Source: Paramoeba atlantica (lineage: Eukaryota; Protista; Discosea). From it: a stretch of 64,000 nt of DNA. The stretch covers positions 620,001 through 684,000 of the forward strand of contig CDRNVI010000003.1 of assembly GCA_977017575.1 (NCBI GenBank), given 5' to 3'. Below are positions 9,877-62,589 of the stretch, piece after piece. A program made the translations under genes and the position numbers. Position 1 is the first letter of the stretch. The number at the start of each line of letters is the position of its first letter. The notes beneath the pieces are model-generated. The model worked only from the letters and a program-made list of their open reading frames with translations, had not been told where the DNA came from and did no database searches.

Positions 9877-9913
9877 CAACAAGGTACAGAAACTGTATCT
9901 TTATCGTTAAAGT
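9877..9913 (-). other. Full 37-nt spliced-leader exon relic
   Basis: Reverse complement reads ACTTTAACGATAAAGATACAGTTTCTGTACCTTGTTG. It is followed by ACTTTTC, not a GT donor, and flanked by a 35-bp direct repeat (9843-9877, 9916-9950). Confidence 0.85.
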
Positions 9914-10289
9914 CAACTTTTATTCGTGCGAAATACAAATAAGAAAAGTCTGTCTAATTTTGCAAATAATATCATACCGTAGTTCACGAATAAATCCTTC
10001 ATGTTTAATTCCTGACACTAGTACAAAGGCCCAATTACATTTTCAAGAGTTTTATTAAGGCAGGGTAGTGGATTAACTTGTTAATCCACGCTGGGGAGTA
10101 GCGAACCCCTCCTACCCTGGAGCTAATAATTATTGGTTTCCTTTCATAGGAGGATAAGTCGGGTGTGTGCCCTCTATGGTTGAGATTACTCCTGTGTTGG
10201 CACAGATGCTTCGAGCATCAGCATCCGCACAGCGGACCTAGGCTGGAACTAGGGGGCCATATCTCTTCGGAGACAAACGGCCTTGTGAT

Positions 10290-10500
10290 AAAACAAAACA
10301 AACAAACTACCCGTTCGCACCCTGCCTTCGAGAGTACTCCATGCTGTAATGGCGCGAACAGTGGCTCTAGAATGTTCTCGTACCTTTGTATGAGAATGCA
10401 TCCCGCTAATTTCATCAACACTTCCCCAATGGCGACAGGTCTTATTCCACCATTCGGTTTATGGAGCGCGACCAGCCTGGCGCGGGTGAGACGACGCATC
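10290..10500 (-). pseudogene. CRE-like (subfamily B) RT fragment
   Basis: RLTRARLVALHKPNGGIRPVAIGEVLMKLAG..QHGV matches the RT N-region of the elements at 50629-51834 and 55392-55690. Confidence 0.8.
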
Positions 10501-10509
10501 ACTTCTTTT

Positions 10510-10590
10510 TTCATCACCCCCTTTTTGTTTATCACCCCCTTTTTGTTTATCACCCCCTTTTTGTTTATCACCCCCTTTCTGTTTAATCAC
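10510..10590. repeat. 18-bp tandem repeat (TTTATCACCCCCTTTTTG) x~4
   Basis: Direct inspection. Confidence 0.9.
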
Positions 10591-10715
10591 CTTTTTTTTG
10601 AGAGAATCTACCTCCAAAAATACATATCAATCTTTCATAATTCCCGCCTACAGTGCAGCGGTTAAAATACAATATTGCCCCTTAAATTAGGGCTTCTTCT
10701 TCACATGATGATCTC

Positions 10716-14963: not shown

Positions 14964-17217
14964 TTACGCCACATGTGGTCCGGGGATCTGCATCCAAAGC
15001 ATAGAAAAGTCCGTCGTTGGGGGAAACCAGTCGGCCGTGTCTGTCCAGGCGAGGGGCGCGTTGCCAATGCAGGAGGTGAACCGGCAAACGATTGATAACG
15101 GGCATATTGTTTCTGCCGATCAGCTAACTGGTCACTCACATGATGGTAGAACTTGTCCTCCGGACGTACATCCTTCTCCAATTTCAGATGCACTAACTCC
15201 ACATCGACACGGCGCGCGCGCCAATATGCGTCCCGCATGGTTTGTATAATTCCACGTCCCATCTCCAGATACACACCCTGGTTCCACTGCGGAGTAAGGC
15301 GCGCATAAATCAACCACTTGCAAAACACTGTGTTGAAAATCCGTTCTTGCTGTTTCACGAAAGCTCGATCGTATATTTGACCTTGTTGATTACTAAAAAC
15401 ATACCCCCCATGCGCCCCTTCAACCCACCCCCCTCCCAGAGGAAAACCCCCTCGTATCACCGCCCCTTTGTGGCCGACGTCGCCCCCTTCACTCTGCGCC
15501 CTCCACTTCGTTGCTCCCTTCGCTCACCCTGCCTCAACTCCCCCGCTCCTTCGCGGCCCTTTTTCGCCCCCCTCCGCGCCACGATCTCGGCCGCCCTCCC
15601 GCTCCGGTGCTCTCCTCGCCGCGCTCTCCCTCGCTGTTTTTTTTGCTCCCTCCCGTGCCCCCCTCCGCGCTCCACGCAACGCTCTCCGTCGCCCTTCCCC
15701 TCTGGCGCTCTCCTCCCACGCTCTCCGCCGCTGTTTTTTTTTCTTCGTTGCCTTCGTCCTCCCCTCGCCACCCCCTTGGTCGCCCTCTGTTGCCCCCTAC
15801 GTCGCTCTGCCGCGCCGCTTTTCGCCCCCCACCCACTGCGCCGTCCCCCTCGCCGCCCATTCCCCCGCCCTCCCTGCTCCCACCTGCGCCACTCTTTCCC
15901 TTCATCCCCTCCGCCACCCCCTCACGCTGCATCTCGAAAAATGGCGCCGCCCGGTACCGAATATAACAAGGTACTAAAAAACTAGGGTAGGCGTCATTCA
16001 CGCTTTTTCTTTTCTTTTTTCTTTCTTTCTGCGGCTTGCAACTAGCCCATGATAACGGGGCTAGGGTAACAATTTGGAGAGATACGAGCTTGTTGAAGCT
16101 GAGATTTGGCCTGTTGAAGCTGAGGAGCCAGTCCGCTCGAGGGGATACCACCCTAGAAGACTTGGTCCGTTGAAGCTGAGATGCTAAAACCGTTGAAGCT
16201 GAGAGTCGACACTCCCAAACTATGCCAGCAAGAAGGCAAGGGGTCAAGGAGCACTGCTTTTGGCAGTGTCGGGGTGTGGCGAACCCCACCCTCCTAGCTA
16301 ATCCAGCTTCCCGCAGCGGACTTTCAGTCTGCGCGTTAGCTGGATCGGCTTGCATCGGCTCTGTGCTGCAATCCTTTTAGGTCTGCGCATGGGTCGTGCG
16401 GGTCGGAGCTACCTTCGGCTCTCTCCGAGGAGGCAACACCCCGTCTACGGGGTTTTTACCTGATACATAACATAACATAACATATTTGATTTATACGCAA
16501 TTCAAATTCGGGCGCATCCCGAAGCTCCCTAATCAGGTCGCGTGTTCGGAAACCATCATCGTCAACTGCATTTATCCATGGACCGAACGTAAGGGGCTCA
16601 TAAGGATTCAGGGCGTTCGGGTCGACGAGCAATGGGGCTCCATCTGAGGGATTTTTTGATGTCGAAACGAGCGGTACACCAATAGATCGTCCTCCGGCCA
16701 AATCGTTACGATTCGAAAAAGCCTCGTCGTGTAGTGGGCCCGGCGGCCGACCAGATGTCGACTGTAGAGCCACTTGAGTCGGATTTGAACTACTCGTTGA
16801 AGGATTAGAACTACTCGCTGAACTACTCTCTGGGGGAGAATCGTCAATAACTTGAACAGCGTAGTAATCAAGCTCGGGGTGCGGAAACGGATACTCCTGG
16901 CTGGGTTTATCCTCCCATACGGCCCATAATTCGAGGCCCTCCTTTCGAACCTTTCCAAACAAAGTCTGACGACCCGCCTCGCTGTCATCCTTGCGCCGAA
17001 ACGTAGCCTCCACCTTCATTACGGGATGATTTCCTGGCTTTAACATAAGCTTTTCCCGTACAACCGTACATACTAAACTCAGTTCCTGTTGCGTCAGCGG
17101 CTCGGTAGGCTCGAGCGACTGCACAAGAGAGGAACTTCGCGAAGAGCGTAACGCCCGTGTCGATGGTGCGTCGATAGTTGGCATGAAAAAAAAACATTTT
17201 CTGTCGCGAATAATCAA
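14891..17217 (-). pseudogene. gag of T3 with CCHC knuckle, split by a 1.1-kb insertion
   Basis: N-half (16482-17217) and C-half (14891-15380) rejoin in frame as EFELRINQIYDRAF and align with T7 gag. Knuckle CFGCRSPDHMWRNC. Confidence 0.85.
15381..16481 (+). mobile_element. Non-coding SINE-like insertion, family S1, 1101 bp
   Basis: 8-bp TSD ATATTTGA (15373-15380, 16482-16489), no TIRs, (ATAAC)n tail after GGGGTTTTTACCTG. C-rich 5' half, hairpin module at 15940-15998, four GTTGAAGCTGAG repeats. Starts with CCTTGTTG, the SL 3' end. Other copies at 24725-25490 and 30370-30552. Confidence 0.85.
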
Positions 17218-24724: not shown

Positions 24725-25490
24725 CTGTTTGTTTGTTTGTTTTTCAGGTAAAAACCCCGTAGACGGGGTGTTGCCTCCTCGGAGAGAGCCGAAGGTAGCT
24801 CCGACCCGCACGACCCATGCGCAGACCTAAAAGGAGCGCAGCACAGAGCCAATGCAAGCCGATCCAGCTAACGCGCAGACTGAAAGTCCGCTGCGGGAAG
24901 CTGGATTAGCTAGGAGGGTGGGGTTCGCCACACCCCGACACTGCCAAAAGCAGTGCTCCTTGACCCCTTGCCTTCTTGCTGGCATAGTTTGGGAGTGTCG
25001 ACTCTCAGCTTCAACGGTTTTAGCACCTCAGCTTCAACGGACCAAGTCTTCTAGGGTGTTATCCCCTCGAGCGGACTTGGCTCCTCAGCTTCAACAGGCC
25101 AAACCTCAGCTTCAACAAGCTCGTATCTCTCCAAATTGTTACCCTAGCCCCGTTATCATGGGCTAGTTGCAAGTCGCAGAAAGAAAGAAAAAAGAAAAGA
25201 AAAAGCGTGAATGACGCCTACCCTAGTTTTTTAGTACCTTGTTATATTCGGTACCGGGCGGCGCCATTCTTCGAGATGCAGCGTGAGGGGGTGGCAGAGG
25301 GGATGAAGGGAAAGAGTGGGAAGGGAAAGAGTGGCGCAGGTGGGAGCAGGGAGGGAGGGGGAATGGGCGGCGAAGGGGACGACGCAGTGGGTGGGGGGCG
25401 AAAAGCGGCGCGGCAGAGCGACGCAGGGGGCAACAGAGGGCGACCAAGTGGGTGGCGAGGGGTGGGCGAAGGCAACGAAGAAAAAAAAAA
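24725..25490 (-). mobile_element. Second S1 SINE-like copy, 5'-truncated at the internal T-run
   Basis: Near-identical reverse complement of 15735-16460, with the same 3' end (..TTTTTACCTG) but an (AAAC)n tail. Confidence 0.85.
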
Positions 25491-25491
25491 A

Positions 25492-25528
25492 ACTTTAACG
25501 ATAAAGATACAGTTTCTGTACTTTGTTG
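25492..25528 (+). other. Full SL exon relic (T variant, ..GTACTTTGTTG) directly upstream of the intact CRE element
   Basis: 37-nt match, followed by AATTTTTC with no GT donor. Confidence 0.85.
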
Positions 25529-28500
25529 AATTTTTCTTTCTCTTTATTGCTTACTAGGGTCGCACCATGCCGCCCGATGATTCCTTTGATGCCAACGCGT
25601 TACCAATGGATGATGACTCTTTTCGCCAGGAACAAATGTCACACAAACCCGGAGATTGGGACCAATTCGCAGGAAACGCTCACCTGATTTTCGGCCAAAG
25701 CACCTGCAATGAACTTTTGTATACGACACCTATCCCCGAAAACGTACCTAAACACTGGACCGAAAGAGCCTACAAGATCGCGGCAGAGGAACCTACACCG
25801 GACACAGGCAGAATGACCGCGGACGAAGAGACAAATCACTCCCTTGTCGTGGCAAACAACGTGGGAATTACTTCGGAGGCCTCATCCGCCCACATTTTCT
25901 CTCCAACTAAGGCTACAAAGCGCAAGAATACTGATTCTGCCCCTACCACATACCACAACGCCAATACGCAGCAGAAGGATGTAGAACGTCAATGCCCAGC
26001 AGAAGGATGTACGTGGAAAACCCCACCACATAGCGGAAAATGGCAGGCATTTTATCACCATGTGGCTCATCGACACGGCAAAAACATTCCAAACGAGTGG
26101 TGGGAGGGAGAGGGAAGATTCCTCTGCAGAGATTGTAGCAGACACTACGCCAAGAACAAGCTCAAGTCTCACCCCAAAAACTGCAGGGGCCGCAACAATT
26201 CCGGACGGTCATTAGCCCCACCTCTTCCAACGGCACGTCCCCAAAACGCAGAAGAAAATCCAACAGACAATTTGCCATCACTCGGCTCCATCTGCGCACT
26301 TCCCATGAGCACCTGCAAAGACGTTCCACACTGTTGCAGATTCCTCTGGGCGAGCATCCTCACGCAATCCTTGACATCCGCAGTGAAGGAAAACACGGTA
26401 GAGGCATGGACACTTCTCGCAATGCTCCCTAAGTGTGTCCTACCAGCACCTTTCCGAGGCGGTCGCAAAGGCCACACATCATACTCTACGTACGTCGAAA
26501 ACCGCATGAAACTGTGGCTAGCGGGGGAGTACCTCTTGCTATGGGAAGATGCCGAGAGGGATCATTATAAAAAGCGCTCCAGATCACGCGACTCCGAAAT
26601 CGATGCAGACAGAGCGGCAATTCGAGCCGAACTCTTGGCCCGCCAGGGGGAATTTTCCAGGGGAATGGAAGCCCTAACCGCAGCCCCCCTGGCGCCAGAC
26701 AACGCAGATACCCTCGAAAAGCTCTTGGAGAAGCATCCAGTCCCACACGAAAATCCCTTGCAGAATGATCTACCACCGATCGAGGGCAACCCCCTACACC
26801 TAGAGGAAACAGAGGTCAAAAAAGCGATCGTCAGCTTCCGCAGGGGATCTTCCGCCTGCACGATGGGCCTTCGTCCAGAGCACCTCCAGGCAGCCATCTT
26901 GGAACATGTGGACAAGGATGTGAATCCTCTCTCGGCCCTCACGCGACTAGTGAACCACATGCTTCAAGGAAAAGCGCCACAAGACGTCCAATCATTCTAC
27001 GCTGGAGCCCGGCTCTGCGCCCTGGAAAAAGGCGAGGACGATGTTAGACCAATCGCAGCGGGTGAAACCCTTAGACGCCTCGTAAGCAAGGCGGCATGTA
27101 TCTCGATAAAGGAGAAAGCGGGTACTCTGTTCAACGGGCGACAATATGGTGTAGCAGCCCCCTCGGGAGCCGAACGAGTTATCCACCTCTGCCGGAGAGC
27201 CATGCTCAATAACCTGGGGAGTGACAATTTTGTCTTCTGCAAAGTGGACTTAAGAAACGCTTTCAATAACGTCAGCAGGCCTGTTCTCACCCTAACCACG
27301 CGCTTAAATTTCCCCGAACTCTCACCTTGGGTAGAGTGGTGTTACTCCAACGTGAGCTGTCTTACCTACAGAGACAATGTCATACCCTCGGCGGAGGGGG
27401 TACAACAAGGAGACCCACTAGGCCCTCTTCTCTTCTCTCTAGTACTATCCAGTGTAACAGAAGAAATATCGTCTCGGTCGAATCTAGACACTCAACTTTG
27501 GTACCTAGATGACGGGGTACTCATAGGGGAGGCTGAGGAGGTCAGGAAGGCGCTCGATGTTTTTTCCGATGTTGGCTCCCGATGCGGACTTTTCCTAAAC
27601 CCATCGAAATGTGAGATAATAACACCGCCTGCTTCATCCCATCTCACAGGATTATTTCCAGAGATACCGAAGGCTAAAACTCGTACTGATGGAAATTTCG
27701 ACATCTTGGGCTCCCCGATTGGGTCAGCGGAGCATTGCGTGGAGTTTCTCAGGTCAGAAGCCATTGAGCCCGCACGCGAAACACTAGACGCAATAGGTCT
27801 CATAGGAGACCCACAAGTAGCCATGTCCCTCATCCGGCAGTGCACTGGATTCTGTCAAATGGTCTACGCACTTCGCACGACACCCCCTCATGCGCTTTCT
27901 GAGCTTTGTAATTCCCTTGATGAAAATGTTCTAAAAGCCGCGGAATGGGCACTTTTCCCTCTGGATTCCCACGCGCGTGACCAAATCCAACGTAAGAAGC
28001 GCAACGGGGGTTTTGGTCTCAGGTCTTCGCTCCTCCACGCAACAGCAGCATATGTCTCCTCCGTTGCGCACGCCGCCGATGCAGACGATTGGGACCCTTC
28101 AGAAGCCGAGGGATTCACCACTTCCGTGCAAGACGTGAATAGAAAGGCGGGGGTAGAACTTGTGGATCCCGGTACAGGACGCATCCCGAAACAGAATAAA
28201 CCACATCCAGAGTCCAGCCAAAGACACAACCTCACCTCGAGAAGCAAACGCCCACGACACATACTCAACAACATGGACGCGGATAAGACGGCCGAGCCGG
28301 AAATGGTTATCCCCCGGCAGCAGCAACTGAGCCAAGCCATATCGCAGCAGGAATTCACTACAGCCTACGGCCAGGCCGACCCCCGCACCCGAGCACGATG
28401 GGTTTCTCAGTCAGGAAAGGGAGCTGGGAGCTGGGCCTTCGTCACGCCCTCAAGGAGTAAAGGTTTTGCCTTCACACCAACCGAGTTCCGCACGTTATCG

Positions 28501-29608
28501 CGCTGGTGGTTTGGCATGGACATTTATGGCCAAGACCGCCCCTGCCCAGCAAACGGGTGTTCCCTACCCCTACAGAAAAATGGGGAGCATGCATTATTGT
28601 GCAAGAACGGACATGGCCTCATCACGCGGCACAATGCGCTTTGTGTAGAATTCGCCTCCTTTTGCAGCAAGGCCAACATAGCTCCCCAGCGAGAAAAAAG
28701 TCTGGGAAATCGGGGGCCAGGAGGGGGTCTCACCAGACCGGCTGACGTTTTCCTCCCCACGTACACTCTAGGGAAAGGCATGGTACTAGACTTCGCAGTC
28801 ACTCACGCACAGCAAACAAAGTATTTGGACTCTGTCCGGAATGCTAGCTGGGTGGCTGCAGGGTCTTTCGCCGAGCATTACTCAGAAACGAAGGAAAAAC
28901 AACGTCAAGAAGCAGAAGAAGCACAACTAGGGTTCACGGCCATGGTTGTCGAGTCTTTTGGCTCGTGGAGTAAAAGCGCAATGGCGGTCTTATGGAAGGT
29001 GGGAGCACTACGCGCCAACTCGTCAAAAGGTCTTCTCACGGATGCTCAAGCCCGAAATGACCTTCTGAAAGAGCTTAACGTCACACTCATGCGCTCTCAG
29101 GCCCGCATGATGGTCTCCCGGATAGTCGTCAGTGACCCCCAAGCTCCCCTGGAAGAGGAGTAGGGCCCACAGGCATGGTCCTCTAGGGTAACAAGACGAT
29201 TAGGGTGCTGGTCGCGTCGATAGAGTCTATACTCACGCCTAGCCCGCGAGGGCTAGGTACCCCAAGTGAGGTAGTACACGGGCAGTGAATCTCCTCCCCG
29301 TCGGCCAGCATCCTGTTTCGCGACCGTGTCGCTGTCGACACAGGCCCGCGCCTGCGCCCTCCTGTATAACAAGGGAAGGGTTCACAAGTCAGGCCGTGGA
29401 GAGGTCGAAAGACCCGGTCCGGAACGCGCGAATGGATTGGGCATAGATTGCTTGATTTTATTGTTATTATTTTTATTGTTCTTATACTTACGGGAGATCG
29501 AATTGCTAGTTTTGGGCTCCAAAATATGAAATTGCTAATTTGATTGCTTGTTTTAAAATCATATACCCCCCCCAATGGACCTACTTGGTTCGTCTAAAAA
29601 AAAAAAAA
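25529..29608 (+). mobile_element. Intact CRE/SLACS-like non-LTR retrotransposon (subfamily A) with poly(A) tail
   Basis: Single long ORF, ~430-bp 3' UTR, A-run at 29596-29609, SL copies on both sides. Confidence 0.9.
25567..29163 (+). CDS. CRE-like ZnF-RT-REL protein, 1198 aa
   Basis: N-terminal zinc fingers (CPAEGC..HVAHRH; CRDC..HPKNC), RPIAAGE, DLRNAFN, GVQQGDPLGP, YLDD, GFGLR, CPANGC..H..C, RHN, RPAD..LDFAVT (restriction-like endonuclease). Confidence 0.92.
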   Translation: MPPDDSFDANALPMDDDSFRQEQMSHKPGDWDQFAGNAHLIFGQSTCNELLYTTPIPENVPKHWTERAYKIAAEEPTPDTGRMTADEETNHSLVVANNVGITSEASSAHIFSPTKATKRKNTDSAPTTYHNANTQQKDVERQCPAEGCTWKTPPHSGKWQAFYHHVAHRHGKNIPNEWWEGEGRFLCRDCSRHYAKNKLKSHPKNCRGRNNSGRSLAPPLPTARPQNAEENPTDNLPSLGSICALPMSTCKDVPHCCRFLWASILTQSLTSAVKENTVEAWTLLAMLPKCVLPAPFRGGRKGHTSYSTYVENRMKLWLAGEYLLLWEDAERDHYKKRSRSRDSEIDADRAAIRAELLARQGEFSRGMEALTAAPLAPDNADTLEKLLEKHPVPHENPLQNDLPPIEGNPLHLEETEVKKAIVSFRRGSSACTMGLRPEHLQAAILEHVDKDVNPLSALTRLVNHMLQGKAPQDVQSFYAGARLCALEKGEDDVRPIAAGETLRRLVSKAACISIKEKAGTLFNGRQYGVAAPSGAERVIHLCRRAMLNNLGSDNFVFCKVDLRNAFNNVSRPVLTLTTRLNFPELSPWVEWCYSNVSCLTYRDNVIPSAEGVQQGDPLGPLLFSLVLSSVTEEISSRSNLDTQLWYLDDGVLIGEAEEVRKALDVFSDVGSRCGLFLNPSKCEIITPPASSHLTGLFPEIPKAKTRTDGNFDILGSPIGSAEHCVEFLRSEAIEPARETLDAIGLIGDPQVAMSLIRQCTGFCQMVYALRTTPPHALSELCNSLDENVLKAAEWALFPLDSHARDQIQRKKRNGGFGLRSSLLHATAAYVSSVAHAADADDWDPSEAEGFTTSVQDVNRKAGVELVDPGTGRIPKQNKPHPESSQRHNLTSRSKRPRHILNNMDADKTAEPEMVIPRQQQLSQAISQQEFTTAYGQADPRTRARWVSQSGKGAGSWAFVTPSRSKGFAFTPTEFRTLSRWWFGMDIYGQDRPCPANGCSLPLQKNGEHALLCKNGHGLITRHNALCVEFASFCSKANIAPQREKSLGNRGPGGGLTRPADVFLPTYTLGKGMVLDFAVTHAQQTKYLDSVRNASWVAAGSFAEHYSETKEKQRQEAEEAQLGFTAMVVESFGSWSKSAMAVLWKVGALRANSSKGLLTDAQARNDLLKELNVTLMRSQARMMVSRIVVSDPQAPLEEE

Positions 29609-29657
29609 ACTTTAACGATAACTTTAACGATAAAGATACAGTTTCTGTACCTTGTTG
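29609..29657 (+). other. SL relic: 12-nt partial copy plus full 37-nt copy right after the CRE poly(A)
   Basis: ACTTTAACGATA ACTTTAACGATAAAGATACAGTTTCTGTACCTTGTTG AATT. Confidence 0.85.
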
Positions 29658-30190
29658 AATTATTTCTCCTTTTCTTTCCTACAACATCTTCTGGACCATG
29701 GGAGGGCACCCCCCTCAAATTCTCACTCTGTTGCCGGCATCCCCCCTCCCTCTCTCATCCCATCATCCCCTCGCGTCATATCTCCCCACCTCTTCCTCCC
29801 GCCTCTGCGCGCTCGTTGTTCTTCTGTCTTTCTCTCTTGCGTCCCCCACCCCCGTGCCAGCAGCCCAAAGTATTGTATCCTTGCTCACGGGGTGGGGGCA
29901 GAGTTCCAGACGGATGGGCTGCGGCGTCGTTTTCCCTCGTCTCCGCGTCCGTCCCGCCATGTCTCTCTTCCCGCTTTTTGCCCTTGGCGCGACGGCGTCT
30001 TTGCGCTTCGTTACCTCCACGTCTCCCACCCTCGTACAGCAACACAAAGTATCTGATACTGCTAACGGGGTGGGAGCGGAGGTCACCTCCACATCTTCCA
30101 CCCTCGTACAGCAACACAAAGTATCTTATACTGCTAACGGGGTGGGAGCGGAGGCTCTGGACCACATGGGCGCTCGCGCGGACGAGTCGG
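29658..30190 (+). repeat. SL-headed C-rich non-coding sequence X; first ~165 bp repeated at 44351-44510
   Basis: CTTTTCTTTCCTACAACATCTTCTGGACCATGGGAGGGCACCCC..CGTTGTTCTT at both loci, each behind an SL. Internal ~63-bp tandem repeat at ~30026-30150. Confidence 0.75.
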
Positions 30191-30369
30191 TATAGGGTAG
30201 GGGGTAAGGACGGGGATGGATGAGAGGGTTAAGGGAAAGTGTGGAAAGTGGGGAGTAAGTACGGTGAAGTGGGGAGAGTAAGTACGGTGAAGTGTGAAAA
30301 GTGTGCGAAAGTGTTCGAAAAGTAGATAAAAAAAAACTCCGGCGGAGAGCGCGGGAGGAGAGCGCCAGA

Positions 30370-30552
30370 GGGGAAGGGCGACGGAGAGCGTTGCGTGGAG
30401 CGCGGAGGGGGGCACGGGAGGGAGCAAAAAAAAAACAGCGAGGGAGAGCGCGGCGAGGAGAGCACCGGAGCGGGAGGGCGGCCGAGATCGTGGCGCGGAG
30501 GGGGGCGAAAAGGGGCCGCGAAGGAGCGCGGGAGTTGAGGCAGGGTGAGCGA
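30370..30552 (-). repeat. Partial third copy of the S1 C-rich segment
   Basis: Reverse complement of ~15519-15725. Confidence 0.8.
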
Positions 30553-31404
30553 ATTAGTGTCCTGTATCTGTGCCCATGTTGTTGTTGTTGGGTCCTGTAT
30601 CTGTGCCCATGTTGAATAATACGAGATAGACTTGACTTTGGAGACTAGAAGATTATTTGGCTTCAAAGGCTTATGCCACCTAGTCATTTTTCACCCTGTA
30701 TGTGGTTCCGCAATTGCGATACGATAGTGTAAGCCGCAAACTTTTCATTTTCCAATTGAAAAGCTTCACGTATAACTTTTGGGTCAGAATCCGCTCGTTT
30801 TGCAAGGGCTTTGATCAAGACCTTGGTATCTTCATGTAACATTCCACAATCCTATAAAGCTATGCAACGAAAATACTCTGGTTCTAATCCCTTCTCTACA
30901 ACGAATTGTGCATCATAAATATTATAAGAAAGAAAGAAAGCACTAAGCAAAACAATATCTTCATTCCCCTCTTCTATCTGATATTTGATACGTTCAATTC
31001 TATGCACATTCAAAATTCATATGAATACTGTATGACCGGTCATAACATAACAAAATTAAATAATCCCACAACACTTCTGTCCTCTCCAAGCTTGCGAACG
31101 GGTGACGCGGGGAGTGGTTAGGGGGTTTGGCGGGTGGGGAAACTTTAACTGTCGCGAGTTAACAAAGGAAATAAAGTCTTGAATTTATAATCACCATAGC
31201 AAACGTCATATTCGTCTGTATACACATGGGGTTACATCTGGGGGGTGTATATATCAAATCAGTTGAATTCTTACAACAGGTACAATGCCCCTCGGCCATC
31301 ACACAATAGATAAACTGGTATAACGTAAATAATTTATTCGCCCAATTCTCTCCGTAAACTATGAGAATTGTGCATCATAAATATTATAAGAAAGAAAGAA
31401 AGCA

Positions 31405-40187: not shown

Positions 40188-40193
40188 AAGGCC

Positions 40194-43043
40194 ATGGATA
40201 GATGTAAAAAGTACTTAAAGCCTGCATCAACCCCGAGCGAAGCCCTACTACATACGGAATTACTGACAGCTTGCATGGCGGTCTCGGTTTATGAAGTTGT
40301 ACGGGAACTCGACCCCACCAAAGGGTTCAAATTGCGCTCCAAAATTGGCCATGCGAAACGCCCCACACGACCCCTTAGCTATGACCGCTCTGCGAAGCAA
40401 CTAGCAGGACACATCCGTCAACTGAAACGTACTCTTTCCTTTACCCACGGACGCTCAGAAAGGGACCGCTTGATCGGCAACATAAAAGAAGCGACCAAAG
40501 CGCATAAGCTGTACACGGAAGAAGCGAAACTAGTCAAACAAGAACGAGAGAAACGCTGGATGATGGACAGGTTCCAAAGAAACCCTTGGACAGCAGCCGG
40601 AGAGTGTCTTGACAAGAACGAGCAACTGGTAAATCAGCCGGCAACCTTTCCAGACTGCTCGCAAGCAGCTATCGAAACATTTTTCCAAGAATCGTTAAGC
40701 ACAGACACGGAAGATCATAGTCTACCTCCAACAAACCTCCTTGGCCTGGATCTAGAGAATGCAATGGAATGGGAAGCAATCGACGTACCAACCATAGCAG
40801 TGGCAATCTCCTCGAAACGCCCCTCGGCTGCCCCAGGCTCCGATACCGTGGGAAACGCATTTCTTCGACGCTGCGAAGAGCTCTACCCGTTCATCGCGCA
40901 AGTCTTCAATGACGTACTGAAGCATTCGGTCAGCCCTCCCTATTGGAAACAGGCCGTCACCCGACTCATTCACAAAGGCGGAGCTCCCAACCAATTGTCC
41001 AACTGGAGACCCATCAGTCTTACGAGCTGCCTTGGTAAGTTACTCCACTCCATTATTGGCCACAGAATCTTGAGCCATGCTGTGACGACAGGAATAATTG
41101 ACACAACCATACAAAAAGGATTTTTGCCAAACGTAAATGGAACTATCGAGCATACCCAGTCACTCTGTGAACTATTGGACTTTCAACGACAGCATAAACG
41201 ACAATACTGCCTTGGTCAATTTGACTTAAAGAACGCGTTTGGTTCTCTCCCACACTCCATTCTCTTTCAAGTCCTAACGTGGGCAAAGGTATCACCTCAA
41301 ATCATCGCGTACATCCGCTCCCTATACCATGATGCGACTATCCGGATCAAATGTTCGGAAGGGCTGACCAAACACATCCCCGTCAAACGAGGTGTTCTCC
41401 AGGGCGACACACTATCCCCCGTACTATTCAATCTCGCCATGGAAGTGGTTCTACGATATCTCCGATCGAGCTTCCCTAGCTATGGTATTAAATGGGGCAA
41501 CCAAGAGTCGTTCTTAAAAGCCTTTGCAGACGATCTGGCTATCATCACGAACTCGGCTGAAGAAATGCAACACGTGACGAACGCCCTGGTGAACATGCTT
41601 TCCAGGTTAGGCATGCGCCTTAACGTACCGAAATGTCGTCTCCAACACATGTCTGTAGCAGAAGGCGGATATAAGACCCACAGACCCCGTATCTTGGCAT
41701 ACGGTGAGAGTATTCCCAACGTTTGCGACAAAGGAAGTCAGTTCCTAGGTATGACACTCGCGCCGGGGGCCCAACAAGGGAAAGTACTGTTCAAAAGTCT
41801 CCTAAAGCAGCTACGATTTTGGTTGAACAATGTATCCAATAGTGCCCTAGATACCCCCGCTCGTCTCTGGGCCTATAATAACGTAATCATATCTCGCCTG
41901 CGATATGTGCTCACGGTCAATCCAGGAATCACACTAAACTTTATCCTTCGACTACAAAAATATGCGACGAGACACATTCGAAAATGGATAAACATGGCCA
42001 AAACAGCTACGAGCGAAGTTCTGTACTCTGAACGCGGCTGGGCTCTCACCAGCCTGTCTAAGCTTTGGTTACTCTGCACAGGCACAGCAGTTGAACAGAT
42101 GAAAAAATCTCGTGATCCAGCAGTGCAACAAGCGCTGAGATATCGCATCCGTCGTGAACACGACAAACGTTCTTCCGGACAAGTGCGACCAGTCGTCGAG
42201 TTGTACGACCGCAGTGGAAATCACGCATCGACACGGCAATACATTGAACATGAATACGAAAGACATCTCTCAGAAGCTGTGCAGCGTCGAGCACCAATCG
42301 CGGGGCAGTGGTTTCGCATGGCTACAGAAGACGACCTCGCGAAAGACTTCGCTGCTGCTCTGTGCAATATTAAAAGTACGTCGCTCTCCAGATTTGCTTC
42401 ATCTGTTCTGACACAGACACCGCTTCCGACCCGATCCGCCTTACACCGCTGGGGCCTCAGTTCCCACACGAACCGTAAATGCCCCATTTGCACAGAAGAC
42501 GTACAAACTGTGCGCCACGTTCTAACAGGCTGCAAGGCCGCCCTGCAACAGGGGCGGTATACCTTCCGTCACAACCTCATTCTACACGCCCTTGCAGATG
42601 CTATTCGACAATCCCCCGAAACCGCACAGTATCACTTTGACCTCGCTCACCATCAGAATCCGCCAACCTGGCTGAGCGGGCAAGAAACGTCCCTCCGACC
42701 TGATGGATGGGTCCAACTTAAGAACGGTTCTGAGTTCATACTCGAACTGACATCTCCGTGGGAGGAAAATTTTATCTCCTCACACGAACGGAAGATGCAG
42801 AAGTATGGACATATGTATCTACAACGGAAAATGTCGAACCCAGCCACTTTTCTCCTGGCCATTGAAGTAGGTGCCAGGGGAAAGCTCAACAGCTCAACTC
42901 GAGCACTGAACTCCCTTTTTGGTGGAAACAAGGCCACCGCCTCGCGATGTCGTCAGCATATGGTAACAAGAGCCCTTAGTGGCAGTTTCAAAATTTTTAA
43001 TAATCGCGACATTGAGCAGTGGAGTGAGGGCACGTGCTGGTGA
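40194..43043 (+). CDS. ORF2 RT-CCHC-REL, 949 aa
   Basis: NWRPISL, QKGF, DLKNAFGS, GVLQGDTLSP, FADD, GWAL, CPIC..H...C, RHN, RPDG..LELTSPWE..K..KY. Confidence 0.9.
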   Translation: MDRCKKYLKPASTPSEALLHTELLTACMAVSVYEVVRELDPTKGFKLRSKIGHAKRPTRPLSYDRSAKQLAGHIRQLKRTLSFTHGRSERDRLIGNIKEATKAHKLYTEEAKLVKQEREKRWMMDRFQRNPWTAAGECLDKNEQLVNQPATFPDCSQAAIETFFQESLSTDTEDHSLPPTNLLGLDLENAMEWEAIDVPTIAVAISSKRPSAAPGSDTVGNAFLRRCEELYPFIAQVFNDVLKHSVSPPYWKQAVTRLIHKGGAPNQLSNWRPISLTSCLGKLLHSIIGHRILSHAVTTGIIDTTIQKGFLPNVNGTIEHTQSLCELLDFQRQHKRQYCLGQFDLKNAFGSLPHSILFQVLTWAKVSPQIIAYIRSLYHDATIRIKCSEGLTKHIPVKRGVLQGDTLSPVLFNLAMEVVLRYLRSSFPSYGIKWGNQESFLKAFADDLAIITNSAEEMQHVTNALVNMLSRLGMRLNVPKCRLQHMSVAEGGYKTHRPRILAYGESIPNVCDKGSQFLGMTLAPGAQQGKVLFKSLLKQLRFWLNNVSNSALDTPARLWAYNNVIISRLRYVLTVNPGITLNFILRLQKYATRHIRKWINMAKTATSEVLYSERGWALTSLSKLWLLCTGTAVEQMKKSRDPAVQQALRYRIRREHDKRSSGQVRPVVELYDRSGNHASTRQYIEHEYERHLSEAVQRRAPIAGQWFRMATEDDLAKDFAAALCNIKSTSLSRFASSVLTQTPLPTRSALHRWGLSSHTNRKCPICTEDVQTVRHVLTGCKAALQQGRYTFRHNLILHALADAIRQSPETAQYHFDLAHHQNPPTWLSGQETSLRPDGWVQLKNGSEFILELTSPWEENFISSHERKMQKYGHMYLQRKMSNPATFLLAIEVGARGKLNSSTRALNSLFGGNKATASRCRQHMVTRALSGSFKIFNNRDIEQWSEGTCW

Positions 43044-43236
43044 AGAGTTTTAAAAACCTAGGAGAAACTCGTTTTGTGCGAGGATTGCGTGCTAGTCATG
43101 CATCTTCTAGGTATCAATCTCTGCAGTTAAACTGCATGAATATCAAAAGCGTGTGCGTGATTGAAAGTCAAAATGCATAGGTACTTAGTCACACACACAA
43201 AAAAAAATGTGTGATGTATTATTATTATACTATTAT

Positions 43237-44310
43237 TAATGCCGTGGCAGATCAGTTCGCCGACCTTTGCAGCAGAGCCAAACTGGCCCCACAACGAGAA
43301 AAAAGTCTTGGCAACAGAGGCCCAGGGGGCGCCCTCACCAGACCCGGCGATGTCTATTTGCCCGGTCTCCAGTTGGGGAATCCGATTGTACTTGACTTCG
43401 CGGTCACCCATGCTCAGCAACTAAAATATGCGGACAAAGTCCGGAATGCTAGCTGGGTAACCGCGGGGTCATTTGCTGAACAATATTCATCAACGCAAAA
43501 GGGCCAGCAGAGACACGAATCTGAAGAAGCCGGCTGTGCCTTCACCGCCATGGTGGTGGAGAGCTACGGTGCGTGGAGCAGCAGTGCATCCGCAGTACTC
43601 CGTAAAGTTGGAGAACGGCTTGCGGGTTATTTTGCGGGCTCGTGCGGGTTATTGACAGAAGGGGGGGCGACGAGCAGAATCTTCACGGAGTTAAACGTGA
43701 CCCTCATGCGCCTTCAGGCCCGCATGATGGTTAATCGCCTTCTCCCTTATGACCCGTTTTCTTGCTTCGGGGAGTAAACGTTTCCTGACCGGACGGCAGT
43801 CAGCACAGACCCACGTTTGCGCCCTCATAGATGGCTGGCCTGGATGCTGGTCGATGCCGACAGGGTCTATGCTCACGCCTAGCCCTCAAGGGCTAGGTAC
43901 TCCAAGTGAGGTAGGACATGGGTCGGGAACTAAAACTTCCTCCCCGTCGGCCAGCACCCTGTTTCGCGACCGTGCCGCTGTCGGCACAAGCCCGCGCCTG
44001 CGCCCTCCCATATAACAAAGGAAGGGTTCACAAGTCAGGCCGAGGAGTGGTCGAAAGACCCGGTCCGGAACGCGCGAATGAATTGGGCATAAATTGCTTC
44101 TTTTTATTATTATTGTTATCAAAATCATAAATAACTTAAGGCAGGTTGAATTACTAGTTTTGGGCTACAACATGTGAAATTGCTAATTTGATTGCTTGTT
44201 TTCAACTCGTATATCCCCCAATGGACCTACTTGGTTCGTCTACTGGGTTAAAATATAGAGGCAATGCCGCGACTCATACTTCTCCCCCCTCATTAATTAA
44301 AAAAAAAAAA
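43237..44310 (+). mobile_element. 5'-truncated CRE-A copy: REL domain, 3' UTR, poly(A)
   Basis: RPGD..LDFAVT ORF ends at 43777; 3' UTR homologous to 29200-29595; A-run at 44299-44310. Confidence 0.85.
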
Positions 44311-44345
44311 TTTAACGATAAAGATACAGTTTCTGTACCTTGTTG
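44311..44345 (+). other. SL relic (nt 3-37) directly after the CRE-A poly(A)
   Basis: TTTAACGATAAAGATACAGTTTCTGTACCTTGTTG, then a 10-nt repeat TACCTTGTTG and sequence X. Confidence 0.85.
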
Positions 44346-44695
44346 TACCTTGTTGCTTTTCTTTCCTACAACATCTTCTGGACCATGGGAGGGCACCCCC
44401 CTCAAATTCTCACTCTATTGCCGGCATCCCTCCTCCCTCTCTCATCCCATCATCCCCTCGCGTCATATCCCCCCACCTCTTCCTCCCGCCTCTGCGCGCT
44501 CGTTGTTCTTGACTTCGCTCTCTGTACGCACACCTTCTTTGAGTTTTTTTCTTCTTCTTCTATTCCGTAAAAAAAAACGCCTTCAAATATCTTTTTTTTT
44601 TACTTTTTGTATGTCTTCATGTCACACATATTCATCATTTTGCACGTGCCTCCTTCTAAAAAAAAAGCAAACTTTCTTTCTAAAACAAAGCAACT

Positions 44696-48448: not shown

Positions 48449-49152
48449 TCAGCTCGGACCGACAACCTCGAAATACATTTCTGACGTCATAAATGGTAGC
48501 AACTTGTTCATTTGTGCCTTGGTCAAAGGCTGGGCTTGTTGAAATGGAATTTGCGATCCGCAGCCACCTTTGCGAGTTGGAAGACGGATCCATGAAATTT
48601 GAGTATCTGTCAGTTGGCCAAACCAGTTTTTGAGGACATCATCTACGCTTGCATCGAACTCCTGTGCCAAATTCAGTGTCGCGGGTGTATGCAGTGTTGT
48701 ATTTTGATTTTTGAGGTGACATGCATCACGCAAGAGACGTGCACTCCTCAGCAGGAAGAAGAAAACTTCCTGTCTCTTCAGTTTGCCGGAGCGTAAATGG
48801 GTTATCCGTGCTCATCAACAAACCTCCGAGACAAGAAGTCTCACTTTCCTCTGCTTCAGAGTACACAATCTCATCACTTACCCATTGAAAGCATTCCGCA
48901 ACACTCTCCATCTTTCCAGTTTGCCGGAGCGTAAGTGGGTTTTCCGTGCTCATCAACAAACCTTCAAAATGAAGAGTGTCTCGTCCTGCTTTCAACGAGC
49001 ACATGATCTTTTTGCATGCGCATGCCACACTCAGTGCCTTTTTCACCTTTCCAGTGTCGTTTGCTTCGGAGCGCGGGCGAAAGCGAGGGTCCTCCGACGA
49101 TGTGACATTTGAAAGGATCATAAAAGGAATAAAAATCAACAAGGTACAGAAA
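48449..49152 (-). other. SL-headed chimeric fragment: 16-nt SL remnant, a segment with a ~45-bp repeat, then a CRE-B thumb fragment
   Basis: TTTCTGTACCTTGTTG (rc of 49137-49152); GTTTGCCGGAGCGTAA..CATCAACAAACCT at ~48781 and ~48920; WFGQLT..RLPTRKGG at 48560-48680. Confidence 0.6.
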
Positions 49153-58777: not shown

Positions 58778-59769
58778 ACACGCTTTTTCCTTCCGAAGCT
58801 ACCTGGTCCCGTTTTCGCTTTGATTTTTTTCTGTTTTGCACGCTCATCTTCGGCAAGCTGAGCAAACCGATCGCCTGTACGTTCTTCAGCCTCCATTTTC
58901 GAACGGATCGATTCTACATCAACCTTCAGTTCGCGTTGATAATGCATGTCTCGTAGAAGTTCACAAATGTTTTTACCGAGCTTAAGACAGTGTCCCTCAT
59001 CCCAATCTTCTGTCTCTCGCGCATTATAAATCCACTCGACAAGTAGATTCTTAAATATCCGTAGTCGGTACTTGGGCGGGTCATCACGTAAACCGAATTC
59101 TTCCGCGTCGCGTAGTTCACGAATTAATTCGCGTAATTTCAACGGATCTCCATCATGCGCCATCCACAATTTCCATGTTAAGGGATCCATTGCATCGAAG
59201 TTGTACGCATCTCCCCGACGTTCCACCTCGTTATCAACTTCGATTTCCTGACCCCCTGGCATTTCGTAGTACACATTTTCTACAACAAGATCATAGTAAT
59301 AGATATCGCGATGGGGAAACCGGTACTTCCGGCTTGGGTTCGTCGTCCATTTGGCCCACAATTGTGTACCTTCAAGCGATAGAACTCCAATAATTGTGTC
59401 CGTATTTTGCGGAGCGTGCGGCCTTTGCGCGACGGGCCCAGTAGATGGAGCCCAAACAGCCTTCACAGTAACTCTTGCACCTTGGTCTATAAGAGTCTTT
59501 ACATGCACACAAAAAAGATCAAGCTCGCGCTGTGCTAAAGGTGCACCTACGGGGGTTGCTGCCGGCCCATTTTGTTCCGAATTACTTTGTGTCTGCTGCG
59601 TTCTTTCTTGGTGAGTCTGTTGGGTTCTTTCTTGATGAGATGCATTTCGCTGTTCTTGAACATTAGCTCCAGAAATCCGCAGCGAGGCGTCCGAACATTC
59701 AATAAGGCAGAAACAATATAAAGTATCTAATTCCAGAAATACGCACTTCTGTCTCTTTTCACTGAACAT
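58660..59769 (-). CDS. gag-like protein of T7, 369 aa, with CCHC knuckle
   Basis: CFICHQIGHLQKDC; aligns with the rejoined T3 gag. Confidence 0.82.
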   Translation of the reverse strand: MFSEKRQKCVFLELDTLYCFCLIECSDASLRISGANVQEQRNASHQERTQQTHQERTQQTQSNSEQNGPAATPVGAPLAQRELDLFCVHVKTLIDQGARVTVKAVWAPSTGPVAQRPHAPQNTDTIIGVLSLEGTQLWAKWTTNPSRKYRFPHRDIYYYDLVVENVYYEMPGGQEIEVDNEVERRGDAYNFDAMDPLTWKLWMAHDGDPLKLRELIRELRDAEEFGLRDDPPKYRLRIFKNLLVEWIYNARETEDWDEGHCLKLGKNICELLRDMHYQRELKVDVESIRSKMEAEERTGDRFAQLAEDERAKQKKIKAKTGPGSFGRKKRVCFICHQIGHLQKDCPSAKTGDFEKRVDGSAIQGSKRSY

Positions 59770-60093
59770 ACAATATTTTTATAGAACAGGAATACATGTA
59801 TACTACGATCTATAATGCGCACGCTAATAAGATAATAACTTGGTACCGAATCTAAAATCAATAATAAAACAAGTAAATACTATGTGAAGGGGCTAAGCCC
59901 CCAACACTCGCAGCCTCCAACCCGCTCACGCGTAGCTATTGAGCTCCTTTCTCGCGTTTATCCAATGTCGCTTGTCATGATAGAATGCCAAAAAGGGTGA
60001 CCAAACCTTCGTGACACGCTTTTCCGAGGTTTTTTTTTTTTTTTTTTTGAAAACTACATGTATATGAACGTCAAAGGTTTTGAACGTTAAAGG

Positions 60094-60500
60094 TTTTTTT
60101 TTTTTTGAATCGCGGCATTGCCTCTATATTTTGACCCATTAGACGAACCAAGTAGGTCCATTGGGGGGGGTATATGATTTTAAAACAAGCAATCAAATTA
60201 GCAATTTCATATTTTGGAGCCCAAAACTAGCAATTCGATCTCCCGTAAGTATAAGAACAATAAAAACAATAACAATAAAAACAAGCAATCTATGCCCAAT
60301 CCATTCGCGCGTTCCGGACCGGGTCTTTCGACCTCTCCACGGCCTGACTTGTGAACCCTTCCCTTGTTATACAGGAGGGCGCAGGCGCGGGCCTGTGTCG
60401 ACAGCGACACGGTCACGAAACAGGATGCTGGCCGACGGGGAGGAGATTCACTACCCGTGTACTACCTCACTTGGGGTACCTAGCCCTCGCGGGCTAGGCG
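60094..60500 (-). mobile_element. CRE-A 3' UTR-only insertion with poly(A), inside the T7 5' region
   Basis: Near-identical reverse complement of 29236-29595; T-run at 60094-60106; (T)nGAAAACT on both flanks. Confidence 0.85.
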
Positions 60501-62552
60501 TTTTTTTTTTTTTTTTTTTTTTTTTGAAAACTTCGAAAACGTGTAGATTTTGTATTTGAATAGTCCCTAAGCACATACACATCCGTTAATAACTTTTCTA
60601 ATGAATTTACGAAATCAATCAATCAACAGTCACATTTTCAATGATAAGTAAAACTATACGTAATAAGCTCTCGCCTGAATTTCTTACCGTAAACTATTAG
60701 GCAGTGACATGTCGGGCAAAGGATTTACTACAGGATAGGGACTCGGCATCGGAATCTGAGAATGACCTGGATCATACCGTCCTGCACGCCCCGTCGGAGG
60801 CGGAGTTAAAGACCTTTGTGAACGCTGGGCCATCGACCTTGTGTTGACCATCGCAAAAATTATCGAAATCGCAAAAAATTATCGAAGTAAAGTGAAGAAA
60901 ATATTGTTCTAAGAATCTTCTTCTAAGAAATATTATATGAAATAACGAAACAAAAGTACATTACACGTAAAGTTTATGCGTAAAAATGCAGTATATGCTA
61001 AAGATGTATTCAAGATTGCACTGGTTGGTGCGTGCATGAAACACGTTAACCACTGCACACTTCCTAAAATTCTTTTCGTAAACTCTTATTGTCTGCTTTG
61101 ATAGTGCACCGTTGATCAGATCTCGAAGCATGTGACATAAACTCAGGCAACATATTTCATCGTAATATGGAGTCTGTTTTGCCTGTTGGGCCTGGGGCCG
61201 CACCTTTCGCCATGCGTCTTCCTGCTTCTCGGAGTTCGTAAGGGGATATACACGCTACTTCTGGAGCGTCTGCGGGAAGACAAAAGGTTGTGGGTATTTC
61301 GGGGTGCAGATCGCGAAGTTTAGCCACTATCTCTTCGTCGCTCAAACATTTGGGCTTAAATTCCTGATCTAGCACGTTCGACGCTTTTGAGACACATCCG
61401 TCCAGGGCAAGACTGAAGGCTTTCTTAATTGCCCGAGCATCTGTTAACGTTTGAGATGGTTGGGAGCCCTGAGACGTATCTTGCGCTTGCTCTTCAATAG
61501 GTTTGCGCCTTCCTCGCTTTGCACTGGCATTTCTCACTGTCGCCAGTGAAAATTTCATCGCAGATAGGACTCGTTGCCAGATTCGGTTACGCTCTGGATA
61601 GTTGCTATCTGTATAATTGCGCATCATTTCGCGGTAGATAGTAACTACACATGGAATGAATTCTGGACTGTCCTGAATGTTGGCATAGGTTCGTAGTCCA
61701 GATCGGCTTCGGTGCTCTGACTGACACTGTATACCGTACGGGCTTCTTGTGGCTGGGGTACTGACGGGTGCCATAGGATTTTGAATACTCTCACATTTTG
61801 CTGAGGCGGTATGTGACCCGCGAAGGTCTCTCCTGCTTTGTGCCCATGAATGCCTTTGTATTCCATGGACAGTTTGTGATTTCCTTTTCGCTTTTGATAT
61901 GCCTTGACCACTCCTTCGGATACGTTGAGCTGTGAATTTAAGTCGAAACTCCAGGCGATCACACATTTGCTTCCGGGTTTCGCTTCGCGCGACTGTTCCC
62001 ACACAGTGTCTGGCGGTGTTGGGAAATGAACGGTGGAAATTATCGTGCGTAATAGGATTCGGACTAAAGACGTAAGGTCGTTTTCCGTGTACGATGTGTT
62101 TAGCTCGCCGGTGACTTTGTCATTTGATGTGTATGTCGACTCTTGATGCACATAGTTTCTTGTCAAAATGGGGGTCACAATCGAAGAATTCGTGTTGCGT
62201 GTCCGCACCTTGTGCATCGATGCACTCGGGACTTGGTATCTGTGACTCTGACATATCGTTGGTTCTTTCCTTCCGCTCGTTAAGGCATCTGCCTTCATAA
62301 TCGGGGTCATTTGTGCATCTCTCTGTGTTTTGAATCGGTGGGAAGTCTTCAGGGTTTCCGAAGTCGCTATCGAAAATTGGAGTTCGGTAGGGATTGTTTT
62401 CTTGCTGAGCGACGGCCGATAATGAGGTGATGGACTGATGATGGACTGATGATGAAACTTGCGGTAGTGCTGGATGTTGCGGGGATGCTATCGAGGGTTG
62501 GGTTTTCTGCTGCGGAACGAAGCGACCGGAGTGTTTTGTCAAGCGCTTGAAG

Positions 62553-62589
62553 ACTTTAACGATAAAGATACAGTTTCTGTACCTTGTTG
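62553..62589 (+). other. Full SL exon relic, head-to-head with the CRE-B 5' end
   Basis: ACTTTAACGATAAAGATACAGTTTCTGTACCTTGTTG followed by ATTTATT. Confidence 0.85.

Follow-up and report, generated by a model that had tools for sequence, protein, structure and literature searches.

Zepp of Chlorella is a known example of a LINE that nests in the poly(A) tails of preceding copies, and Alu and L1 likewise insert into A-tails. The R2 supergroup is better known for strict sequence-specific targets, and end-to-end jumping of the R2 reverse transcriptase (RT) between templates is established in vitro. LINEs of the SLACS/CRE1/CRE2/CZAR clade insert at one relative position of spliced leader (SL) RNA genes (PMC12278014). 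Relics of the SL on retrogenes have been described in dinoflagellates (PMC6050394, PMC5585692). Here, we analyze a 64,000-nt stretch of DNA (the window) from a genome that is read as that of a free-living-type kinetoplastid, in which SL copies stand at the heads of several retroelements. A first-pass annotation had proposed that SL exons scattered by retroposition serve as new landing sites for SL-specific CRE elements, and such a self-seeding SL-target system is not supported as proposed. We favor, with a probability of roughly 55%, the reading that LINEs with a restriction-like endonuclease (RLE) integrate at A-tracts, chiefly poly(A) tails left by previous insertions, building head-to-tail chains.

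Spliced leader copies and the elements that carry them

The SL is 38 nt long. Its copies in the window were identified by sequence match and compared with shuffled sequence, for which 0.00-0.05 matches are expected by chance:

9877-9913 (-): SL relic of 37 nt (SL nt 2-38), inside a tyrosine-recombinase (YR) retroelement
25491-25528 (+): full SL with 1 mismatch, head of CRE-A
29608-29619 (+): 5' SL piece of 12 nt (SL nt 1-12), lying behind the poly(A) of CRE-A and ahead of the full SL of B
29620-29657 (+): full SL heading B, directly 3' of the 12-nt SL piece
38255-38282 (+): partial SL (SL nt 11-38, 1 mismatch) heading REL-2, without an A-run upstream
44308-44345 (+): SL head, followed by a 10-nt duplicate TACCTTGTTG at 44346-44355
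49136-49152 (-): partial SL (SL nt 23-38) at the head of a unit on the minus strand
62553-62589 (+): SL relic (SL nt 2-38) heading the non-coding X, without an A-run upstream

The copies are thus present where the first-pass annotation had placed them, and it was also right that none is followed by GT and that the downstream sequences differ, the SL intron being absent after every window copy. An SL-like piece at 15381, previously listed as a weak 8-nt remnant, is 9 nt long and, taken by itself, no better than chance. Further, the terminal A that had been counted as SL belongs to the element bodies, as the exon of the real gene ends in TTGTTG. A genome-wide scan returned 575 copies of an SL 33-mer (at most 2 mismatches) in the 45.7-Mb genome versus 0 with a reversed control. 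Promoter-bearing SL RNA genes number 35. The SL sequence was also looked for in the literature, with no match. The carriers named at first, specifically a YR element, a CRE element, a two-ORF REL element and the non-coding X, are all headed by SL copies, and one further carrier, B, can be added:

9916-9949 and 9843-9876: 33-34-nt repeat copies on either side of the SL at 9877-9913 (-), with AG before the upstream one
25491-29609 (+): CRE-A, a LINE of one ORF with an SL head and a poly(A) tail
29620-30336 (+): B, a non-coding retroposon (~715 bp) that starts with the SL and ends in A9
38255-44310 (+): REL-2, a two-ORF LINE with a putative RLE, a 3' UTR shared with CRE-A and an A12 tail
44308-44510 (+): B variant, consisting of the SL, the 10-nt duplicate and the first ~165 nt, directly after the REL-2 poly(A)
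60106-60525 (-): truncated CRE-A, with an A25 run (60501-60525) followed by an SL-less, 5'-truncated CRE-A 3' part with an A13 tail

A Phage_integrase match on the ORF at 7645-8679 (-) identifies the element around 9877-9913 as being of the tyrosine-recombinase type, and the YR unit with its SL is also found in tandem on C1 with a 5093-bp period. C1 also holds a near-duplicate of the window. The CRE-A ORF (25567-29163) encodes 1198 aa comprising N-terminal zinc fingers, an RT and a C-terminal RLE-like domain. It matches Pfam RVT_1 (E=1.4e-17) and its best PDB matches are R2 proteins. The nearest named homologues are sponge RTs (~33% identity), and no named SLACS/CRE sequence is found among the top 120 CRE-A homologues. 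The C-terminus, which gave no HMM match, was read by eye and carries a CCHC motif (residues 993-1012) followed by RHN, RPAD and, further on, a D; the same layout was read by eye in REL-2 ORF2. The family of the minus-strand unit headed by the SL at 49136-49152 is also found in L033/L051.

SL RNA genes and the RNA origin of the relics

The SL RNA gene consists of a promoter, a 38-nt exon ending in TTGTTG and an intron starting with GTATGAG, TTGTTG|GT being the true donor. Searches for TTGTTG(A/G)GT donors yielded relics only. The 35 promoter-bearing genes are arranged in arrays, and their RNA is predicted to form a stable three-hairpin fold (z=-6.2). The arrays, the GT donor and this fold are indirect signs that mRNAs of this organism may carry the leader. 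Rfam searches of the window, of L031 and of a real SL gene gave no SL RNA family. An SL array with 7.3-kb spacing is carried by C74. A 2087-bp array on C18 was ruled out as an SL gene array and is instead a tandem SL-headed gag/CCHC element. In all promoter-bearing genes the exon is intact to nt 27 or beyond (35/35), and in all but one the sequence runs on without a break through the intron start (34/35). None of the 35 is preceded by an A-run and none is occupied by an insertion, although it should be noted for the latter count that SL arrays may be under-assembled.

In the window SL copies the gene's intron is missing, which points to an RNA origin of the relics. Instead of GTATGAG, element leaders follow, the SL being joined straight to the transcript body, and the sequence supports the view that these are DNA copies of the leader from trans-spliced element RNAs. 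The first 1-4 nt of relic SLs are often garbled, as is expected where a reverse transcriptase reads a modified cap, and CRE-A-like copies are garbled in the same way as SL-RNA retrocopies, whose derivation from RNA is certain. In the YR copy, the SL is joined exactly at the AG-preceded 33-mer, with the unspliced 33-mer also standing alongside, and some relatives (L049/L050) have SLs in stacks, with re-splicing at an AG inside. The missing intron, the garbled starts and the AG join of the YR copy bear out the earlier suggestion that retroposition of trans-spliced element RNAs scatters SL exons.

Proposed insertion at A-tracts and its alternatives

CRE-A is inserted into a resident G-rich repeat, here called Z-A-Y, of which the window holds both an uninterrupted and a split copy:

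15519-16482 (-): resident repeat in uninterrupted 'empty' form, Z-A9-Y, with A9 at 15734-15742 (self-BLAST and alignment)
24730-25490 (+): Z and A-run, left half of the split resident repeat (self-BLAST, alignment and genome-wide copies)
30337-30553 (+): Y, right half of the split resident repeat (self-BLAST, alignment and genome-wide copies)

Further empty Z-A9/10-Y copies are located at C1:41194, C38:32411, C40:77928 and C40:108764, resulting in five empty loci including that of the window. At 25481-30337 of the window, the composite SL-CRE-A-pA-SL12-SL-B-A9 lies between Z-A10 and Y, and on C27 a second, independent SL-headed insertion is found 8 nt into Y. The same A-tract site is therefore empty at five loci and filled by two independent events, a clean comparison of this kind being limited to one target, the Z-A-Y repeat. 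To judge from the aligned copies, the A-run before the SL of CRE-A is an internal A-tract of the resident repeat and not a lander's tail. Separately, a joint 25481->30328 seen in reads shows the Z-A-Y form; it may stem from other repeat copies and is therefore not taken as a polymorphic empty allele.

That Z-A-Y had no SL before insertion also speaks against a target-site duplication, by which the SL (+AATT) on CRE-A-like 5' ends would be a ~42-bp duplicate of the invaded element's head and not a product of trans-splicing. Window CRE-A does have SL+AATT on both sides, but the bracket is inexact, with the 12-nt piece on one side only. AATT(ATTT) right after the SL is common to many diverged families and the SL-body junction moves by 1-4 nt between copies within one family, both of which such a duplication could accommodate; however, CRE-A tails abut non-SL DNA at 4 loci, and the first-nucleotide garbling is the same as in the RNA-derived SL-RNA retrocopies. 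We consider this very improbable and the least plausible of the explanations weighed here.

What follows A-runs was counted in the window and in L094-L101, sequence that was not picked for SL. L094-L101 are loci reached through homologues of the CRE-A protein. They belong to this genome too, L099 and L038 being 100% identical, and thus represent extra sequence, not an independent strain. A-runs of at least 10 are directly followed by 5'-truncated CRE-A/REL-2 bodies in 8 cases and by SL heads in 5. All 8 truncated copies are in the same orientation, as in LINEs that nest in poly(A), and SL-less elements also stand tail-to-head (L097/L098). In a sample of about 20 independent full SL heads adjoining A-runs, every one continues into a CRE-A-like ORF or B; no A-run precedes the SL heads of YR, gag or other-RT elements, X, SINEs or SL-RNA retrocopies (0/~25). 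SINEs and REL-2, though poly(A)-tailed, were not found behind A-runs, and the preference therefore belongs to the CRE-A-like group, not to target-primed reverse transcription here in general. At a boundary between poly(A) and SL, insertion into the A-run and insertion beside the SL look alike.

These counts bear directly on the model of the first-pass annotation, in which an SL-specific CRE nuclease recognizes DNA-encoded relics and inserts just upstream of or within them, so that relics seed further insertions. Strict adjacency of an A-run and an SL is far above chance (74 cases versus 0 in the control), and the exact CRE-A tail abuts SL at 3 of 7 loci. Yet no more than 74 of the 575 SL copies are strictly adjacent to an A-run, which accords with the A-tract reading. 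However, these three represent one composite type, the other four abut non-SL DNA, as do most tails in L094-L101, and neither the 35 real SL genes nor the ~25 SL relics of non-LINE elements are occupied. The 12-nt 5' SL piece before the SL of B lies near the SLACS/CRE insertion site of trypanosomatids, at nt 11/12 in those hosts. Yet the SL scraps found between an A-run and a full SL end variously at nt 12-14, 16, 19, 20 and 25, and because these ends are heterogeneous there is no single cleavage site. With the A-run before CRE-A's own SL being resident DNA and SL-less truncated copies following A-runs as often as SL heads do, we regard landing at SL relics as very improbable. The dense clusters that it was meant to explain are real, the evidence pointing to poly(A) tails rather than the leader as the source of their growth.

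The internal junctions could also arise in one step if, during a single integration, an R2-like RT that reaches the 5' terminus of an RNA, whether SL or break point, switches to the poly(A) of another RNA and so produces a chimeric head-to-tail cDNA. Such template jumping would account for RNA termini on both sides of the junction, for SL scraps of varied length and stutters, for the strings of very short 3' fragments that each have their own tail, and for a tail-less B' joined to the last 33 nt of a different element. It leaves the outer Z-A-Y junction unexplained, where A-run and Y are resident DNA, would require broken RNA templates for the 5'-truncated bodies behind A-runs, and is never seen at SINEs with SL nt 11-38 heads. 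We hold it to be rather unlikely. At C3:818983 the composite CRE-A-pA-SL12-SL-B is found again next to another 3' flank, and for this case unit-wise copying or template jumping fits at least as well as A-tract insertion.

Under the preferred reading, insertion at A-tracts, three kinds of retroelement would be transcribed, trans-spliced and copied to DNA from spliced RNA, and full-length copies would start with the 38-nt SL because their templates are spliced RNA. CRE-A-like RLE LINEs and their non-coding passengers would then use A-tracts as sites of target-primed reverse transcription, and the longest such tracts in this genome would be poly(A) tails left by their predecessors. As every insertion brings a new tail, head-to-tail chains and dense clusters would grow. 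Reverse transcription to the RNA 5' end would result in a junction of A-run and SL, and an early stop in a junction of A-run and truncated body. The sequence itself shows the RNA-derived SL heads, the empty and the filled A-tract site, the tie to element class and the junctions lacking an SL. We infer that priming occurs on the bottom-strand T-run, and the order of insertion inside chains is likewise inferred.

Comparison with known systems

CRE-A resembles SLACS, CRE1, CRE2 and CZAR in its kinetoplastid host, its one long ORF, which combines zinc fingers, an RT and a putative C-terminal RLE, its poly(A) tail and its association with the SL. Unlike in these elements, the SL of CRE-A stands whole at its own 5' end and is not a split target flanking the element, there is no fixed SL-gene exon position (0/35 genes occupied), and the 3' flanks are often non-SL. 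In a free-living kinetoplastid, CRE-like LINEs are not restricted to SL RNA genes, which is relevant to the question of when SLACS/CRE/CZAR of trypanosomatids became strictly specific for the SL gene. Tentatively, a CRE-related RLE LINE lineage may have abandoned the SL gene target and may now home to poly(A) tails, with tails seeding the next copies. The SL head could then be more than a scar, for example by its AA start pairing with the A-tract in 5' joining or by providing a ready leader for read-through transcripts; we see this extended proposal as possible, if doubtful.

As with the relics of dinoflagellates and perkinsids, a DNA-encoded leader marks copies of trans-spliced RNA, and stacked leaders and internal AG re-splicing are observed. 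Here, however, the leader is carried by three mechanistic classes of retrotransposon instead of host retrogenes, and the SL of the YR element lies at an apparent circle junction between terminal repeats. Marking copies made from full-length trans-spliced RNA, the SL represents a built-in tag for dating and tracing kinetoplastid retroelements.

End-to-end jumping as in R2 could join the 5' end of one RNA to the 3' end of another with extra or stuttered bases, whereas the outer Z-A-Y junction is a true DNA target; to our knowledge, chains of such length in vivo are not a described feature of R2. With Zepp and Alu/L1, the clusters share same-orientation head-to-tail chains, many 5'-truncated members and insertion sites in A-tracts. 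They differ from these in that the endonuclease appears to be restriction-like, as in the R2 supergroup, and that full-length members carry the SL.

Spliced-leader copies and the elements they head

The first-pass annotation had placed spliced-leader (SL) copies throughout the window, and the 38-nt leader was found at each of these places to within one base, with essentially zero matches in shuffled sequence. A 9-nt match is also present at the proposed remnant at 15381, but on its own it carries no significance. The window corresponds to C3:620001-684000 of a genome of 45.7 Mb in 248 contigs. Genome-wide, a 33-nt SL core with at most 2 mismatches occurs in 575 copies while the reversed core, used as a control, occurs in 0; only 74 of the 575 are strictly adjacent to an A-run. 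As first described, none of the window copies is followed by GT and their downstream sequences differ: they lack an intron and each is followed by an element leader.

SL copies in the window and the elements they head
9877-9913 (-): SL within a tyrosine-recombinase (YR) element, flanked by two copies of a 33-34-nt repeat
25491: SL heading CRE-A, a LINE with one ORF (1198 aa: zinc fingers, RT, C-terminal CCHC/RHN/RPAD domain)
29620: SL heading B, non-coding, ~715 bp, A9 tail
38255: SL nt 11-38 only, heading REL-2, a two-ORF restriction-like endonuclease (RLE) LINE; 3' UTR common to REL-2 and CRE-A
44308: SL heading a 200-nt B variant immediately behind the REL-2 tail
49136 (-): SL heading another unit
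62553: SL heading the non-coding element X

The closest relatives of the CRE-A protein among solved structures are R2 proteins. An RNA origin of the window leaders is well supported by their sequence, because the SL copies contain no intron, their first bases vary (AAC, ATC, ACC, AGC and others) as in SL RNA retrocopies, and the join in the YR element is set by an AG, which precedes the upstream repeat, the SL-joined repeat copy beginning at the identical base. Further, relatives at two loci (L049/L050) bear a second, 5'-shortened SL right after an internal AG. A double head, in which SL nt 1-12 stand ahead of a full SL, is found at window 29608-29657 and at loci L027/L028 and L030, and is common to B and its 87%-diverged relative B'. 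As the element upstream of B' differs from that of B, the double head has apparently been inherited, a pattern not easily reconciled with new trans-splicing in each cycle.

SL copies also occur in other arrangements. A tandem array with a 2087-bp period (L031, G000:C18:34500-44499) consists of SL-headed units encoding a CCHC zinc-knuckle protein, with an SL at every unit junction, and L020 (G000:C2:553073) carries two inverted SL copies with overlapping 5' parts (...GTACAGAAACTGTATCTTTAACG...). The start at SL nt 11 (ATAAAGATAC...) is common to SINEs (L058-L087) and the two-ORF LINE at window 38255. With the leaders aligned, this presumably coincides with the position (nt 11/12) at which SLACS/CRE elements interrupt the SL of T. 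brucei.

SL RNA genes and their retrocopies

A genome scan for GT-followed genes using the originally proposed 38-mer recovered relics only; real genes emerge when the splice donor is placed directly after ...TTGTTG. The corresponding pattern, ...TTGTTGGT, occurs 177 times, mostly as SINE heads beginning at SL nt 11 and continuing with gtacatttt. The intron start GTATGAGAAGC is present in 40 copies, 33 of which share an identical promoter, exon (AACTTT...TTGTTG) and intron, with one more differing by a 1-nt promoter indel. These genes form arrays with a ~2.56-kb period on contigs C97 and C107 and smaller groups on C74, C11, C3 and C24, and their RNA is predicted to fold into three hairpins (z = -6.2). 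All 35 promoter-bearing copies in the assembled genome, where arrays may be collapsed, are unbroken up to at least exon nt 27, and 0/35 have an A-run upstream. SL genes in the assembly are thus free of elements at the SLACS/CRE-type site and throughout the first 27 nt. On C74 (G000:C74:104138-121534), four intact genes are spaced 2.7, 7.3 and 7.3 kb apart, which, given the usual ~2.56 kb, suggests ~4.7-kb insertions in SL spacers. A promoter with at least 27 nt of exon at G000:C41:280821-280866, absent from the exon-intron list, may be an SL gene broken after nt 27; a head consisting of SL nt 19-38 (L056) lies 1.3 kb downstream.

Of the 40 copies with the intron start, the remaining 6 are scattered through the genome as retrocopies of unspliced SL RNA, with their first 2-4 bases garbled. 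These (L088-L092 and L071, G000:C6:27079) comprise the exon and the intron up to ...GGGGCTTA, followed by an A-run, and start with AGC, AGA or GTAC, which looks like reverse transcriptase reading a modified cap. A 5'-truncated SL RNA intron copy (TTG-TATGAGAAGC...GGGGCTTATT) lies behind A11 within a chain of tailed fragments (L101:1380-1500).

A-tracts and SL relics as possible insertion targets

Two sequences flanking the CRE-A/B unit, Z (760 bp before the CRE-A SL, ending in an A-run) and Y (217 bp past the B tail), are contiguous as a G-rich repeat, Z-A9-Y, at 15519-16482 (-), as revealed by self-comparison. An anchored genome search found contiguous Z-A9-Y at four more loci; the filled form was confined to the window and a near-duplicate of it on C1. 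As Z-A9-Y is uninterrupted elsewhere, at this single target with empty copies the A-run ahead of the CRE-A SL is resident DNA and the SL-headed unit is the newcomer. On C27, Y is interrupted 8 nt in by another SL-headed insertion that is independent of the first. The near-duplicate, C1:36000-84000, matches window 9800-62600 in element order (Z-A-Y 41194, CRE-A SL 50982, B 55109, X 83946), with one interval ~4.1 kb shorter; it must be a haplotig or else the product of segmental duplication, and junction counts should therefore treat it and the window as one locus.

It had been proposed that SL relics are themselves landing sites for SL-specific CRE elements, producing self-seeding clusters. Were the SL the target, SL heads of other elements should be struck as well. 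Among ~70 distinct SL sites in loci retrieved from this genome, a CRE-A-like ORF (37-98% identity) or B comes after each full SL that has an A-run in front, and no A-run lies ahead of the SLs heading YR, gag or other-RT elements, X, SINEs or SL RNA copies, which counts against this proposal. Of seven loci with an exact CRE-A tail, four abut non-SL DNA, and the three abutting an SL represent one SL12+SL-B composite (window, C1 duplicate and C3:818983). The SL scraps that separate the A-run from the full SL terminate at nt 12-14, 16, 19, 20 or 25; these varied end points do not indicate one cleavage site and look like reverse transcriptase stuttering. In sequence chosen irrespective of SL content, namely the window and eight loci of the same genome found via CRE-A homologues, A-runs of at least 10 directly precede 5'-truncated CRE-A/REL-2 bodies 8 times and SL heads 5 times. 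Examples are an A24 run followed by CRE-A sequence truncated at nt 781 and, at window 60106-60525 (-), an A-run followed by an SL-less 5'-truncated CRE-A body. Elements without an SL head at L097/L098 are likewise arranged tail-to-head.

On the simplest reading, CRE-A-like RLE LINEs and B insert at A-tracts, above all in the poly(A) tails that earlier copies left behind. Every insertion would supply a new tail, extending the chain in one orientation, and an SL would appear at the junction only if cDNA synthesis had extended to the capped 5' end. Self-seeding would thereby survive in altered form, the evidence pointing to the tail, not the SL, as the seed. Internal junctions could also arise by template jumps within one event instead of successive insertions, and some jumping is favoured by the recurrence of the CRE-A/SL12/B composite with differing 3' flanks, by very short tailed fragments strung together and by a tailless B' fused to another 3' end. 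Insertion at A-tracts would be a property of the CRE-A-like group, since REL-2 and the SINEs, both headed by SL nt 11-38, insert elsewhere than at A-runs. Many 5'-truncated 3'-UTR copies (L094:9397, L096:7184, L100:9301, L101:1056) begin within a few bases of one point, about GGAAGGGTTCACAAGTCAGGC (REL-2 nt ~5766-5770), which might mark a strong stop for the RT, a site of RNA processing or an internal start.

Relation to known retroelements

CRE-clade elements insert at one position of SL RNA genes (PMC12278014), all four kinetoplastid TE clades are present in Bodo saltans (PMC4728078) and dinoflagellate retrogenes carry SL relics (PMC6050394, PMC5585692). The searchable literature yielded no account of kinetoplastid transposons headed by an SL. 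Judged by its insertion sites, CRE-A lacks the site specificity that defines the CRE clade. LINEs that nest in the tails of earlier copies are a known kind, exemplified by Zepp. The system described here would be a variant of these, differing in that an RLE LINE does the nesting and that full-length copies are SL-tagged.
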